Below are positions 24,939 through 34,847 of a stretch of DNA of 64,000 nucleotides, piece after piece. The notes below the pieces were generated by a model that made no database searches, was not told where the DNA came from, and worked only from the letters and a program-made list of their open reading frames with translations. This DNA is from Utricularia gibba (taxonomy: Eukaryota > Plantae > Magnoliophyta). Where the stretch lies: NCBI GenBank assembly GCA_002189035.1, contig CM007989.1, positions 7,192,001 to 7,256,000 on the forward strand, written 5' to 3'. The first letter of the stretch is position 1; each line of letters begins with the position of its first letter. The position numbers and the translations under genes were made by a program.

Positions 24939-25601
24939 CTTTGAATTTTCCCCAGGAAGAAGCAGCAGCAACTGCCTTTGGCTTGAAAGAGCAAGAAAGT
25001 GAACCCGGGAAACAATATGCTTTTGATGATGCCTGTGAGTTGCTATCCATCACCTAAACTTGCTTTGGATTAAGGCTACCAATGGAGCAAGAGCAGTTCT
25101 GTAGAGGGAACGTTGTTTCAAGGAAAATGACAGTCAGCTGAGGGGCGCTTCTCACATCAGTTGGCTTTCTAAGGATTAGGTGCTGGTGTTGCTTCACTTC
25201 TCCTCAACATCATGTTTGTCAAAAACTAAAAATTTTACCAATATCAAGATGCAAATTATCTTCATTTCATGCAAAATACCTCATGATCCAAACATCAAAA
25301 TCAAAACCATCAAAGATTTAATGTTGGATTCTCTAAAGGTTGCGTCTTTTTTAAACAATATCAGAACATACAAGAAAACTCCACATATCACCAAATGTAA
25401 CTGTAATGAATGGAATGGTTGAGGGGTTTATTTTAGGAGAAAATGAGAATAAATCAAGTTACTTGATTTACAAAGCACCAGAGAGTAAAACCCTCTCACG
25501 GCTGCACACACTAGAATAACCACTACCCCAAACCATAACTGTTTCCTGGTTCTCCAACCAGAAACCTGCGCTACGCCAATCAGCAACACCAGAAGGATTG
25601 C

Positions 25602-28600
25602 TCATTTCCAGAGATAACGAAGGGAAGGCAAGCATGTAGCAAGCTGCTTACAGTTTTCATGGCCGTGGATTGATGACTGTTCAGTGGAAATCATCATCCT
25701 CCCCAACTTATTTTTGATATCTGTACTACGTATATTATGTACAGTGGTCAGTGGACTGTCCATCCCGGCGTCCCCTCTAGTATTTACAGTCTGCATAACT
25801 GGGGTATCTTTAGTGCTATTTACATGGCTCCCCAGGCTTGGCCAGTTTTCATCAGTACTATTGTCCAATGCGCCGTTTAAACAACCATTGGAAGTGGAGC
25901 TGACTGAACTGGAACTGCTGCAGCCTTGGGAAAGCTTGTTGATTCCGGAGATGAAGCCTAGTCTGTTAGGCTGAAATTGTTCGTTGAGTTTGCTGTGTGT
26001 GACAGGGACCCTGAACACAAGAAAAACGGTTTAGCTTGGAACGCAGTTAGACACTAAACACATCCGATCATATCCACAGTACAGACAAAAATTGAGTAAA
26101 CTTAATTTAAACGATGTAGATAGCCACTGTGGCTGCTGTCTTTGTGCATTCTTTAGTTCACATAAAACCAGCACAGGTTTCAAAAAAAAAAAAAAAAGTG
26201 AGAAGCATATTCAGAACAACGCCAATAAATCAAGTGTATGCATACGAGGAAAACACAACAATTTCTTTGCAGTTGTTGTTGTGAACATACCTCCCCTGCT
26301 GAAACTTTGATGTATGTAGACAATTGTAAACTGGAATCAATTCTTTTGACCTTGCTTCTAACGTACGGATGGGGAACTTTTCAATTTCAAGTTCTCCCCT
26401 GAATAAGCTTCTTCATCTTCATCAGAGCCACTAGTCAGCAACAACTGAAAGTATACCTACCAGGAACCCAACAAGCGTGAGATGCAAAATTCTTGGTGAT
26501 AAGTAGAACTATTTCAATTTCCTAATCATAACGAAGTACCTCTGATCTTAACCAAAGGGGATTAGTGTTTTGATGCATTTGAAGTTCAGCTTCAGATATA
26601 TGCATATTATATTTTTCTTCAGTGATGATCTTTTCTTCAGAAGTTAAATCAAAGTTGGAGGATGAGTGATTCTCATTTTCCTTGCTTGAAGAATATACTC
26701 TTCCGTTAACACAAATACCATCCTCTTCATACATGTCCAGGTTACCAACACCTTGATCCTTGCGTGTCTGCTTCTGGAAAATATTCCATTTTTGCAGTGC
26801 CTCTACCATCGATTTTCCATCACAACTGAGACTTGGCTCATTGTCAATATTAACTCCTGGAGAGATCATCTTACCATCACAAGAAGCAAAATGCAATACA
26901 TATTGCATCAAACATCCAGGTGTCGAAAAAACAAGAAGATAGTAGTTCCTCTTCAAGGAATTAATGTCATTTTGCAACTCATTGCCTTTGCACTTGTGAA
27001 ACACTGATGCAATTGCCCCAGAAAAAGAGTTTAAACGCCCTGCTGTAGCTGCAGCGGCGCTACTCACACTGCTTATCCATCCATCACTTCCATTTCTTAT
27101 TCGGCTAACAGCTGGAAGGGTGATTGGTGAACTGGACTCACATAAATTTTGCGGGGTTAGCAACTGCAGCCCAGAATTCGATGGCCTGTGGATAGCAGGC
27201 TTTCCCACAGTGCAAGGTCCACTGCCTCTACAGTCAAGAGAATCATCAGCAAACTGAAAACTAGCCATTCCACCTGATGGACAAATGGCAAAAAGGTGGC
27301 TTGTTCCTCTGGAGGTACTCACCATAATCCATTGGCTATCACTACTAAAACTTATGTCTTGTATCACCTGTGGAAGCAATTTGAAAAATATCAGAATGAA
27401 ACATTGTAAAAAATGCGAGTCAGTAAACAATAATCAGTAGCCTTACAGCATCTGTAAAACCCCGTTGTAGACTATAAAGATGGATATGAGACGGTCCTGA
27501 AGTTCCAGTGGAGTTAGACAGCCCTGGCATTATCCGGAAGACATTTATATTATGACCTTTAACTGAGGCTGTGACTAAAAGCATCCCGCTTGGATCAAAG
27601 CATAATGCTGAAATAGGACTTGAATGTGCTTTAAATTGTGCAACCACACTTTTGTTTATGATGTCCCTGACAATGACCTGAAAATCGAAGTAGAAACATC
27701 AGAGGGTCAATAAAACATGAAACCATCAAGACAAACCTAGCAGAGCGACAATCAGGAATACTAAGGATACCATGCACTTAGACAAGCTGCATACAAATAT
27801 GTGATAATGATAAATATAGATACCATGCCCACATTGTCTGCATCTGCAGGATGCCCACTGGAGACTCCATTTATCTTAGTAACCGACGTTCCAGAAAGAA
27901 CATCCTTGCCATCAGGCAAAAGACCAGAACAGTATCTCAAGAACTTCTTGCATCCCATATCACCTAAAGTAGCAATTCCAGCTGCTATCTGCTTGCTGGT
28001 CTCTTTTGCATAATGAGCAACAAGGCTACCATTTGACATTGAAGAAGGGAAACTGCATGAAGAGGTGGGGTGCTGCGGATTAACACGGCCTGAATTTGTC
28101 ATAGCAACCAAACTTCCACTGTATGCCATCCAACGAGGTCCCACTGCAAGTGGCCCTAATCCCATATTCAAAGGTCCGTAACATCCAGGGGTTACAGTAT
28201 TTGTAAGGATTGTATACTCTCTTTCCAGTGTAGCAGCATTCAGACAATGAATCTGTAAAGATTGCGTAAGGACAACAATAAATAATGAAACATACCATGA
28301 GAGTCATATTGTAAGTTTATAACTGAAATCAATCATACCTGTGTCGATTGCAAAACACAGACAATGCGGCTGCTAGAACGTACTAAATGTACAGCTGATC
28401 TAAATCTCAAAATATGTATGTAAGACTGGGACTTTAATGAATAAAACCAAACTACAGTCGGCACATGACTCCCGTTGATTGACAGATTATAGGGCCGCAC
28501 GGAACCATTGTAAGGAGCAACAATCCCTTCCTGAGGACGATGAGTATCTTCAGAAACAGATACGTCTGCACAGATAATCAACAAAGGTCGACTATCTGCA

Positions 28601-29377
28601 AACTTGTCCTCAGATCTGGCAGAAGTCAAGGGTGCTGGTTGCATTTGCATGAAGGAAACAGCACAATCCTGCCTTGTGGCTAGCTTACAAACTTTGTCTG
28701 CTGCTTCGACATCCCAGACCTGAAACCCATGGCTGAACCCAAGCAAGAGAACCTGCCTTGTCACACCTTTTTCCAGTTCTAGTTTGTCGAACCCAGCCCA
28801 CAAAACCTTCAAATTTGGAAATAGAGAACATAAAAATAGTAACTAGGAGGCACCAAATGCATGAAAATCTGCGTTTCATATCAAATTAACAGTAAAAGCA
28901 TAAAGGCACTGATTAAATCCCGCGTCCCGTGACATTTGCTATCAGTTGCACAGTACATATTCAGTTTCAAAACTTTACAGAACACAAACAACTTAAGACT
29001 GGCACAAAATATTGCATACAATAATACAGGTGGATTCAAAATTAATAGAGACATTATTTTGCTATAGTAACTGAATAAAAAATACAGCAAACTAGAGGTG
29101 CAAATACGAAAAACAGGCTAGCTCAAAGTTACACAAGCAATGCATAATTATTCTTTCATTGTTTCACCTGATCATGATGAGTTTCCACATCTCTCTCCAT
29201 AACAGCTGAAGCTGCAGATGCAGCAGACCGCATGGTAGAAGCAACGGATGACGCACCTGAGGAAACTATCCTCGAAAGTGTCTTGAAAGAGTGCGGAATA
29301 AGCCCCGTATTAATTCGGCTAGACCGAGCCACCAAAGCTCGGTCACCGCTTTTCTGGCCATCATTCCTCATTCCCAT
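25602..29377 (-). CDS. ATG18F: Autophagy-related protein 18f (WD40 + BCAS3); one -1 frameshift at 26396-26399 as assembled
   Basis: RIVSSGAS...HHDQVLWAGFDKLE, PLAVGPRWMAYSG, QFKAHSSPISALCFDPSG.LLVTAS, VIQDISFSSDSQWIMVST.RGTSHLF and ISEAELQMHQ. Confidence 0.93.
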
Positions 29378-30496
29378 GGCCAAGGAAGGTGCAAATTATT
29401 CCGCACCAAAAGCGCACACTGCAACCGCTTCTTATCTCCTTCACCACATTAATTAACATAACATCCACCAAACTATTGTTTCTACGGTATCTACAATTCA
29501 ATAACCCCAGCTAATCTGCCTCTGGTTCCATTTGTAATCATCCAAAGTTCAAACTTTAGCAAAGCAAACCTTCAAATTATGCACGTTCGCCACCGGTCAA
29601 GAAACCCATGAGCTCACGAAAGAATCCCAAACCGAAAGAAACAATACCCCTTCGGTGGGTTATCAAACGATAGGGAAAAAATTCCAGAAAAAAATAACCC
29701 CTTTTGTTTGTATATCACCTCGTGGGCTGAATCTCGATCAGCAGCCACCTCTACTTTATCAGCGAAACAACTGCTGACTAATCCAAGAAAAAGAATTTAC
29801 CGAAGCTAATAATCATACATTAACAGGAGCATGTACAGATTGAATCAAGAATCGAAGGGTTAGAGATTTGGAGTTCTGAATGCTAGATAGTCAAACATGA
29901 GAAGCGCCTAATTGGGCTGAAAGAGAGAACGAAGAGAAGACGGAGAGGTAAGGCATATACCGGTGATTGCGGACGAAGAAATGTAGAACAAAAACATTAC
30001 ACCATCCCACTACCTCCCCTCGATCACGACTCTCCCCCCGAATTTTCTCCAGTCTTTCTCCTTTATGAAACCCCACGAGTCGTCCACTACCACACGTCTT
30101 CCTTTACGCCGCCGTCAAAACCCAGTTTTCACCGTGGCCGGTAACGGTGAAACATGAGCCAGCCAGAATCCCCAGTGGAGTTCTGTACACGTGGGCTGAG
30201 CGAAGAGGAACGCGAGTAGGTGGAGAATAGGAGAGATGTTTCGTATGGATTTGATCGTGCGGCGGGCAGTGGAGGAGCACGGGAGGATATGGACCCGAGA
30301 AGCACGTGATAACTTTTTGTCATCACCCTGGGGGTATCCGATGAGAATCTGCAGGGCATCTTCGCATTTCCCTTCGAATGTCTCGCCGATTGCAATGACA
30401 ATGCAATCCCTTTTCCAGGTGGTATTGCGGAGTTTGCAGGCCCGGCCTCGGATCAGTGTTTCCGGTGCCATCGCCGGAGATTCCTTCGGAAATTGT

Positions 30497-31008
30497 TAAA
30501 ACGAAGACTGCATAACGCAGCGACGCAAAATGGAAGGAGAAATTTGTTACCGCGACCCCGGTGGGCACGCACCTGTCTTCAACGCAATCTTCTTCGTCTT
30601 CTTCTTCGGTGTCCCACCGGAGGCTTCCACCGTGACATTTCCGCCGACCGCAACTCTACAGCGTTTGACGTGAAACGAAGCATCCGGAAAGGCTTGGCGG
30701 GCATTCAGTAGCCTGGAGCTGTTATCGAAGTAGAAGCAAGTGAGATTTGCGGCGGCGTAGTCGACGAGGCGGCGCTTGCTGCTGTTCCTTTGACCTGGAG
30801 ATCGAAGACTGTGGAGTGGTTGCTTTTTTCGTTGAAGGATCGGAGTCAGTGAGGGCAGAGACGTCGAATTGATTGATTGAGAAATGGAGATCCGAAGTAC
30901 GAAGGCTGAGGCCCAATATCTGGGCGATGAGGCCACTACGAAGTATGAGGAAGAAGCAGGACCTGCAACAGCAACCACAACCGGCGTCACCGCCCTCCGC
31001 CGCGTCAT
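30497..31008 (-). pseudogene. NDR1: NDR1-like (LEA_2/NHL family) relic with four one-base losses and an internal deletion
   Basis: Frame-hopping translation: M(D)AAEGGDAGCGCCCRSCFFLILRSGLIAQILGLSLRTSDLHFSINQFDVSAL / NHSTVFDLQVK / NSSKRRLVDYAAANLTCFYFDNSS / [gap] KRCRVAVGGNVTVEASG...KKIALKTGA / hydrophobic tail. This is collinear with the NDR1 motifs CC.CC.SF..T.GL..LF.WLSLR, KGIYYD..NLTF and R.V.VGADVEV..G.K..KK.IKLK. The FYQGHKK..FRVDL..RFK block is absent. Confidence 0.75.
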
Positions 31009-31244
31009 CACGAAAGGTATAGTTTGCGTGACTAGTGTTGCCTGTGCATTGTATTAACAAATATCAAAGTTCACATTTTGAATCAAACCCATGACTTGAA
31101 AATTTAGATGGCAGGTGGGTAAGTTCAGACCAACAAAGAAGTACCCGGGGCACTACAAATAGAGTACTCTGCCTAGGAAGAGCTTATAACGATGAGTAAT
31201 AATCTCAAAGTATCACCATACGCGCCCTTAATGAGACAGGATGG

Positions 31245-32531
31245 TTACTCATCGTCTTTGTAGGGATACTCCTCCGGACTTGTTTCAGTAACTTCACCTG
31301 CAACTCGAATACATCGTCCCCTCTAAGCATGTCACGCAGCCATGTGACCTCCGTTTTCATGGAAACCTGATGTTCAAACACGAACTTGGATTAGAATGGT
31401 GGATTAAACTGGTTGAGGGAGGGATATGGAAGATGTCTCACCATTTCAAGTGCTCCTCTGATGACTCCACTTAGAATGTTGCAGTAATGAAGGCCTTGGC
31501 AAATATCAGGGAGCTCCACAAAATCTACAAGAGGATTGTCCTCCAGAATGAGGCTGCAGGTTGTGCCCTCAGCATCCCAGTTTGTCACAGATGCTGTCAC
31601 TCCAAGGAACAACTTGAATCCCACCTAGCATTAACATGAGGATACTAGATTCAATTTTGATTCAAAAGATAAAGTGACTCGCAATATTATGATGAACTTG
31701 AGCATCATGATTCTGGGTCTAATTCATCAACAAAACAAAGCATACTCATAAAGATTGCATCCATGACCTGTGAGGATGGATTCATTTCTTTTCTGCAACC
31801 ACTCTATAGGCGAGTAGATGAGATGATCGACACACACACTGAATGGAATTGTTTCTTTGATGCAATTTAATCCATACGCAAACGGCTAGAGTAACAGAGG
31901 GCAGAAGTTCATTTCTATGCAGGAACTTAGTTATTCATTTTCAGGGCTAATAGTGATCAGCATAACATTAAAATAGCAATTTACTGTGCAAAATTCAAAC
32001 AAATAAATTCATTCAAGAGTAAAAGAAAAACACACTGATACAACGAGTAATAAATACCGTGTACATATACCTTGGCAATGACTTCAGCAGTTTCTCTAAA
32101 ATCAACACATCTGGAGACATTAGATTTAGCTAGAAACTCGTCCACTAACCGGATACCGATATTATAACCCCTGAAACAAGACATTAATCAACGGATAAAA
32201 AAACCAACTTTACAAAACCAAAGAAAAACACCCAAAAGAGCAACTGAGTACATTTGGTCTAGCTGCTTATTAACCTCCTCCACCTCCTCTAGATCCGTCA
32301 GGAGCTGGCGTACCATTGCACCGTAGGTAAGTGTAAACAACTCCGCATTCTACGAAATCGAAACCAAATATTACACAATTACCCGACCAGATCCATCAAA
32401 TCTTCAATAAAAATTGGGGAAAACGAAAAGAAAACAAATATATTAGCCGACTTTTAGTTCTATACACTACTTACCACGCGATCAACACTGGCGAAAATTG
32501 CATCCCCGGACTTAGGAGCTGCGGGAGCCAT
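31245..32531 (-). CDS. BET3: TRAPP complex subunit BET3/TRAPPC3 (5 exons); -1 frameshift near the C-terminus as assembled (shifted stop at 31205)
   Basis: MAPAAPKSGDAIFASVDRV, NAELFTLTYGAMVRQLL, GYNIGIRLVDEFLAKSNVSRC, LVDFVELPD.C.GL.YCNILSGVIRGALEMV. The tail reads KQVPEEYPYKDDE only if CC at 31276-31277 is CCC. Confidence 0.95.

Positions 32532-33259: not shown

Positions 33260-34847
<1,588 letters not shown>

Follow-up and report, generated by a model that had tools for sequence, protein, structure and literature searches.

A probable NDR1 pseudogene beside BET3 in Utricularia gibba as the physical trace of a published immune-gene loss

Introduction

NDR1 is a plasma-membrane, LEA_2-like protein that is needed by several CC-NLR immune receptors. 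For coffee, it has been demonstrated that CaNDR1a, which lies one residue apart from CaNDR1b, restores AvrRpt2-triggered resistance in the Arabidopsis ndr1-1 mutant, that CaNDR1 groups with NDR1, NHL16 and NHL38 and separately from other NHL proteins, and that the omega site of CaNDR1a is located at S189/G190 (PMC3212813). Loss of the gene has been described as well. According to Baggs et al. (bioRxiv 10.1101/572560), NDR1 is absent together with EDS1, PAD4, SAG101 and the RNLs in the humped bladderwort and the corkscrew plant, as established by reciprocal blastp and tblastn searches and by the lack of transcripts in three Lentibulariaceae transcriptomes, and the same EDS1/PAD4/SAG101/RNL/NDR1 module has been lost in duckweed, eelgrass and asparagus. 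This work confirms the loss of NLR-signalling genes, NDR1 included, that a preliminary description of the locus treated here had cited. The text of Baggs et al. (bioRxiv 10.1101/572560) makes no mention of pseudogenes, remnants or NDR1 synteny, and our full-text literature search revealed neither another paper linking NDR1 with the bladderwort or corkscrew plant genera nor a description of the relic reported below.

Here we analyse a 64,000-nucleotide stretch of the Utricularia gibba genome (the window), in which an NDR1-like coding sequence lies on the minus strand at 31008-30550, spread over three reading frames. We consider it, at a probability of roughly 85%, to be an unprocessed NDR1 pseudogene that is decaying in its ancestral slot.

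Results

Genomic position and comparators

Comparators were reached by way of the neighbouring gene: a conserved BET3 exon led to metagenome loci, these led to a full-length plant BET3 ORF, and this ORF led to annotated asterid genomes. The order in the window is polyubiquitin, BET3 and relic, in the same orientation as in the corresponding block of Coffea. In Coffea arabica, polyubiquitin on the minus strand is followed by BET3 on the plus strand and by a 214-codon gene, likewise on the plus strand, that is exactly CaNDR1b (ABC86707.1). In Sesamum angolense, BET3 is immediately followed, without a change of strand, by a 212-codon ORF that has no intron; the cluster to which this ORF belongs is named 'protein NDR1' or 'NDR1-like' in RefSeq and UniProt for five Sesamum species (among them the RefSeq entry XP_011095334.1), and NDR1 follows BET3 in this way in two S. 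indicum assemblies as well. An NDR1-like sequence in the same slot after BET3 was also found in Rehmannia, where it is distributed over three frames. A position downstream of BET3, on the same strand and with polyubiquitin beyond, is accordingly what Coffea, Sesamum, Rehmannia and the window have in common.

No NDR1 was detected beside BET3 in Forsythia, Salvia, Striga, Nicotiana or an Arabidopsis-like metagenome contig, nor in the metagenome loci around BET3; as BET3 stands without an adjoining NDR1 in the four named genera, the synteny is not universal. An ATG18f-NDR1-BET3 order, which the preliminary description had proposed to look for in relatives, did not emerge either, since tblastn placed ATG18f away from NDR1 in both Sesamum and Coffea. 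The conserved block is therefore polyubiquitin-BET3-NDR1, and the trio with ATG18f is specific to the bladderwort lineage.

The surroundings of BET3 differ in further respects. An opposite-strand ABC-B transporter follows the NDR1 slot in Coffea and Rehmannia. The transporter is also found after BET3 in Salvia splendens, with only ~1 kb between the two genes and no NDR1 similarity in this spacer, and that Salvia copy has therefore lost NDR1 cleanly. The Rehmannia glutinosa sequence (L085:15681-16281) is unannotated and its two main pieces are 66-76% identical to Sesamum; its three-frame layout is due either to frameshifts introduced by assembly or to NDR1 having become a pseudogene a second time, independently, within Lamiales. 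A 2S-albumin (Tryp_alpha_amyl) gene is located just upstream of BET3 in Sesamum (L082 and L088) and on the Arabidopsis-like contig. On the latter, ATG18f is arranged head-to-head with BET3; the order in the window is tail-to-head.

Homology to NDR1

Direct searches with pieces of the relic gave no identification. Word searches with the 113-codon frame-A ORF and with the 154-codon frame-B ORF were blank, an exhaustive phmmer search with the 62-residue N-terminal piece (frame A) against 1.8 billion proteins returned 0 matches at E 0.001, and a protein atlas queried with the relic pieces yielded unnamed clusters only, at scores of 0.75. Pfam analysis of four relic pieces revealed no LEA_2 domain and only a chance SnoaL match, and Rfam gave no family match in the relic region. 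The identity of the relic therefore rests on the comparators reached via synteny.

Nine NDR1 proteins of Sesamum and Coffea were combined into a profile, which was searched against all 2655 six-frame fragments of the window. Frame A of the relic ranked first (E 6e-11, positions 6-58) and frame B second (E 4e-4, positions 72-94 and 155-191), and frame C produced a weak match at positions 58-73. The only significant tblastn match of Sesamum NDR1 in the window was 30964-30830 (E 1.4e-4, 47% identity). Placement of the three pieces on five NDR1 proteins by MAFFT was collinear, with identities of 42, 38 and 41%, and a frameshift-aware protein-to-DNA alignment comprised 70-71 identities in 157-163 codons; against Sesamum and Coffea NDR1, the relic is collinear at about 42-44% identity over about 140-160 codons. 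The score of the frameshift-aware alignment (197.5) was compared with the scores of 60 shuffled proteins, which reached 38.5 ± 11.2 (maximum 75; z = 14), and with those of 54 other segments of the window, which reached 28.3 ± 13.1 (maximum 67).

These values, together with the positional counterparts in Sesamum and Coffea, bear out the NDR1 identity assigned in the preliminary description, and homology to NDR1 beyond the wider NHL family is supported by these counterparts, the profile input being Sesamum and Coffea proteins only and the clade placement being made via CaNDR1 (PMC3212813). The NHL family is large, with a common N-terminal transmembrane segment and common motifs, so a relic of another of its members could resemble the one described here. 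Such an origin is highly improbable, as the positional counterpart in Coffea is a functionally validated NDR1 orthologue, CaNDR1 is placed apart from the NHL proteins other than NHL16 and NHL38 (PMC3212813), and three NDR1-type features persist, namely LSLRTS, KR..V.VGG..V and the CCC cluster ahead of the membrane segment.

Reading frames and lesions

Frame A, read on the minus strand from 31009 to 30833, translates as DDAAEGGDAGCGCCCRSCFFLILRSGLIAQILGLSLRTSDLHFSINQFDVSALTDSDPS and ends in SINQFDVSAL. This N-terminal part of the relic includes the ancestral ATG, itself one base out of phase, as well as a stretch rich in Cys, the transmembrane segment, LSLRTS and the region of the first NHL motif. 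Frame B (minus strand, 30786-30565) reads NSSKRRLVDYAAANLTCFY ... FHVKRCRVAVGGNVTVEASGGTPKKKTKKIALKTGA, and its second part takes in the final strands of the LEA_2-like domain together with the GPI omega site region (Table 1). The presence of NDR1-collinear segments in three frames, as first noted from the letters of the window, is thus upheld by the three-frame translation and by the MAFFT collinearity with Sesamum and Coffea NDR1.

Table 1 Features of the NDR1-like relic and its neighbours in the window.
Feature	Position	Strand	Evidence and remarks
Polyubiquitin gene, divergent from BET3	33681..34847	plus	Pfam; tblastn; synteny anchor common to Coffea and Rehmannia
BET3/TRAPPC3, intact upstream neighbour	31076..32500	minus	Pfam TRAPP; CT..AC joints in X5 and X11; 96% identity to Sesamum BET3
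Putative NDR1 relic, N-terminal part	30833..31008 (frame A read 31009-30833)	minus	profile E 6e-11; tblastn E 1.4e-4
Frame C short segment KSNHSTVFDLQVK	30789..30829 (codons 30827-30789)	minus	weak profile match, positions 58-73; collinear with the other pieces
Frame B segment NSSKRRLVDYAAANLTCFY plus ~15 poorly alignable codons, up to the deletion scar	30687..30786	minus	profile positions 72-94; MAFFT columns 76-100
Deletion scar	30685..30687		profile positions 95-154 absent; 63 other letters for base 30686 in X3 and X11
Frame B segment FHVKRCRVAVGGNVTVEASGGTPKKKTKKIALKTGA	30550..30684	minus	profile positions 155-191; stop 30549-30547 in frame B
Possible remains of the C-terminal hydrophobic tail, other frame	30480..30561	minus	homology not demonstrable; Coffea and Sesamum alignments differ on the frame
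ATG18f-like gene (BCAS3-family WD40), downstream neighbour	25600..30039	minus	Pfam BCAS3 and BCAS3_WD40; RNA contigs of X5 and X11

Four one-base frame losses had been proposed, and a break was recovered near each of them. Between the sole ATG (31008-31006) and the NDR1-like frame A, the phase is off by one base, and the corresponding break 1 is confined to the interval from 31006 to about 30985 (near 31005-30999 in the frameshift-aware alignment). Break 2 leaves two leftover bases in the A-run at 30829-30828, and break 3 leaves two at 30788-30787. The fourth shift (~30561-30549) is weakly placed, the C-terminal tail being too variable. LKTGA is kept and is followed, eight codons on in the same frame, by a stop, and the frame of the tail is ambiguous. 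The frame that starts from the ancestral ATG is open for 153 codons (31008-30550) up to the stop at 30549-30547.

The missing LEA_2 block that had been noted was recovered with all three alignment methods. MAFFT opens a gap of 48 columns, which correspond to Sesamum residues 95-142, the frameshift-aware alignment one of 47-56 residues, and the profile leaves positions 95-154 unmatched; from the FY anchor to the KR anchor, the net shortening is about 43-44 codons. By these comparisons, the gap is real and has removed about 48-60 codons of the LEA_2-like core, its size varying with the method. The Pfam LEA_2 match to Sesamum NDR1 is weak (residues 71-160, 19.8 bits) and falls below the Pfam cut-off even for this intact gene; its extent, set against the internal gap, leads to the conclusion that about half of the LEA_2 domain is gone in the relic.

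Comparison with Sesamum and Coffea by MAFFT also confirmed the reported erosion of conserved residues, with WLSLR changed to GLSLR and KP.C to DLHF. A short-repeat scan of the relic detected nothing. Of the attributes of a functional NDR1, the relic lacks both an uninterrupted frame of ~210 codons from the ATG and a complete LEA_2-like core, and it cannot encode an NDR1 protein.

Independent sequencing runs

Over 29500-32500, the window was compared with the contigs of four public runs, each from a separate study, namely X1 (DNA, 2013), X3 (DNA, 2019), X5 (RNA, 2020) and X11 (RNA, 2017). The contigs of X1 (30251-30963 and 30938-32125) and the contig of X5 (30382-31046) showed no mismatch or gap anywhere in the relic. 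Elsewhere, contigs of the same two runs correct the assembly by one added G at each of 30329, 31275 and 31714. The G missing behind 31275 was seen in all four runs; the assembly consequently frameshifts the last nine BET3 codons, and addition of the base restores the BET3 C-terminus (...KQVPEEYPYKDDE then stop). As the contigs detect homopolymer errors of the assembly yet reveal none in the relic, the breaks in the relic are not assembly errors. This removes the earlier reservation that the small losses could partly be such errors, and the X1 and X5 contigs are likewise without the missing block. Breaks 1-3 are unchanged in all four runs, and disabling changes are present in all that were sampled. 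At position 30033, a further single base occurs in read sets without a counterpart in the assembly.

The same data bear on the idea of an intact NDR1 that looks broken because a region was collapsed and single bases were lost from homopolymers. Single bases are indeed missing from the assembly at the three positions given above, and breaks 1, 2 and 4 do lie in short runs. This explanation is nonetheless barely credible and already largely refuted: the X1 and X5 contigs run across 30382-31046 without a gap or mismatch, X3 and X11 also leave breaks 1-3 as they are, conserved residues have been substituted too, and the 62 bases that X3 and X11 have in addition, a number not divisible by three, would leave the frame broken.

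Variation between runs

X3 and X11 bear the same species label, are 95-99% alike and differ from the relic by six to eight indels. Both carry 12 additional bases at 30980, a loss of 3 bases at 30594, another loss of 3 at 30562 and a gain of 1 at 30568, and in both, 63 letters replace base 30686 (net +62), at the very position of the deletion scar. X11 alone has also lost 4 bases at each of 30636 and 30641. The lengths of several of these indels are not divisible by three. Since the additional 62 bases would put the two halves of frame B out of phase, no run possesses an open NDR1 frame.

The single internal deletion of the preliminary description thus has to be divided, as the loss of the core stands and its interpretation as one fixed event does not: the internal deletion is composite and variable between runs. 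The indel differences between runs fit ongoing erosion by small deletions in a very compact genome. A more specific proposal, which we regard as doubtful, is that the core of NDR1 was removed stepwise and recently by small deletions, so that the relic would document, while it is still under way, the loss of DNA from a shrinking genome. If this were true, a comparison of the locus among further bladderworts, and with corkscrew plants and butterworts, could be used to order the loss of the NDR1/EDS1 module and to obtain a direct estimate of the deletion rate. In a weaker variant of this proposal, the spacer may be kept as a carrier of the distal BET3 3' end. Among the sites listed, X3 differs from the window 14 times in the 446-base BET3 intron (31623-32068) and 4 times in the 512-base relic, and the relic is far richer in indels than this intron.

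Substitution rates

A Nei-Gojobori analysis of 115-138 shared codons revealed saturated dS (pS 0.6-0.77), for which reason the locus provides neither an omega value nor an age against Sesamum and Coffea, and the suggestion that the loss could be dated did not hold in these comparisons. In a three-point estimate, the relic had a nonsynonymous branch of 0.43-0.52, compared with 0.06-0.07 in Sesamum and 0.10-0.12 in Coffea. Identity to Sesamum at the first, second and third codon positions was 0.59, 0.68 and 0.49, from which we conclude that a residue of past constraint remains. A crude protein-distance lineage ratio against Sesamum reached 3.7 for the relic and 2.9 for BET3, the latter being noisy owing to few BET3 differences; as the two values are close, the rate evidence for relaxed constraint is suggestive and not decisive. 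Overall, the rate data are compatible with a long relaxation, and it is the frame breaks and the deletion that carry the case.

Neighbouring genes and transcription

The BET3 protein of the window is 96% identical to those of Sesamum and Orobanche and is closest to Lamiales. Its spliced exons lie at 32475 onwards, 32251-32349, 32069-32169, 31440-31622 and 31364-31076, and the RNA of X5 and X11 supports four BET3 introns by CT..AC (GT..AG) joints, with zero depth inside the large intron. Introns in the window measure 75-446 bases, and the genes are ~1 kb apart. X1 contains a second BET3-like contig, matched to 31276-32125, that is 90-95% similar, has different intron lengths and is unrelated downstream of 31276; it probably represents a paralogous BET3 from a genome duplication. 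The 5' end of the ATG18f-like gene falls near 30025-30039, where RNA contigs of X5 and X11 end, ~450 bases below the relic, and depth is zero between 30106 and 30307.

The relic DNA is transcribed. In X5, which has zero depth in the BET3 introns, the 665-base contig at 30382-31046 spans the relic with roughly one third of the depth of the BET3 exons. In X11, one contig reaches from 30482 across the relic and continues into spliced exons of BET3. Rather than an NDR1 message, the transcript most likely represents passive read-through from BET3 or a BET3 isoform with a long 3' UTR, the contigs being blind to strand and ends.

Transcription at this depth, and the one contig that joins BET3, would also be expected if the relic had been retained for a new role, be it that of a distal BET3 3' UTR, of regulatory DNA upstream of ATG18f or of a newly arisen 153-codon frame (31008-30550). 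That the frame from the ancestral ATG is open over this length and that few substitutions separate the runs inside the relic can be read in the same way. The 62-, 1- and 4-base indels of X3 and X11, however, would break the 153-codon frame, which is not conserved within the species label, and six to eight indels in 500 bases look unconstrained. Moreover, the frame A piece had no protein match among 1.8 billion representatives, the 154-codon frame-B ORF gave no match in the word search, and no Rfam family matched. We therefore regard exaptation as very improbable.

Discussion

The observations are best accommodated by an NDR1 gene that has been decaying where it originally stood. Comparison of Coffea and Sesamum shows that the common ancestor of Lamiales and Gentianales possessed an intronless NDR1 of ~210 codons directly downstream of BET3 on the same strand, with polyubiquitin beyond BET3. 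In the bladderwort lineage, the constraint on NDR1 may have been lost together with the EDS1/PAD4/RNL module, and the gene would then have decayed by way of deletions and small indels and not in one large excision. The present copy has its start codon out of phase, at least three further frame breaks and ~48-60 core codons deleted. Decay appears to be continuing, with X3 and X11 keeping breaks 1-3 and varying by further indels, including the one of 62 bases.

Alternatively, the relic could be what remained after the loss of a duplicate. The polyubiquitin-BET3-NDR1 block would in that case have been duplicated by whole-genome duplication, and another NDR1 copy would have been functional, or would still be functional, elsewhere. 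Bladderwort genomes have passed through several rounds of duplication, and the second BET3 contig of X1 points to a BET3 paralogue. Just past the BET3 stop (loose end 31276), this paralogous contig no longer resembles the locus, and Baggs et al. found no NDR1 in either Lentibulariaceae genome, nor transcripts in three transcriptomes (bioRxiv 10.1101/572560). Loss of a duplicate is an improbable explanation in our assessment, and we retain that of an NDR1 pseudogene decaying in its ancestral slot.

By our own arithmetic, the tblastn E value of 1.4e-4 obtained in 64 kb scales to roughly 0.2 in a genome of ~100 Mb, and the failure of direct searches is probably the reason why genome-wide scans in the literature recorded NDR1 as missing. 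The relic was exposed by synteny alone. Its location turns a result of 'not found' into positive evidence for the published convergent loss in aquatic and carnivorous plants, and it indicates that the gene was lost by decay in place and not by removal of a chromosome segment. The lesions of the relic provide specific markers that can be sought in related genera for timing the loss.

The loss of NDR1 as such is already published; the relic contributes its physical trace together with usable markers, is an ordinary pseudogene in kind, and requires no new biology to be explained. Compared with NDR1 itself (Arabidopsis At3g20600, CaNDR1a/b and Sesamum XP_011095334.1), it occupies the same slot as in Coffea and Sesamum and preserves the same order of segments, and the Cys cluster, the membrane segment, LSLRTS, NH.t.FDL, LT.FY, KR..V.VGG.V.V and LK.GA remain recognisable. 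Unlike NDR1, the relic has no in-phase start and at least three further frame shifts, 48-60 core codons and the in-frame C-terminal tail are gone, and the conserved W and KP.C have been replaced. With the loss described by Baggs et al., it shares the gene concerned and the small, local nature of the events, as inferred there for duckweed; whereas that study scored NDR1 as absent, here the remnant itself has been located, in a form that varies between runs.
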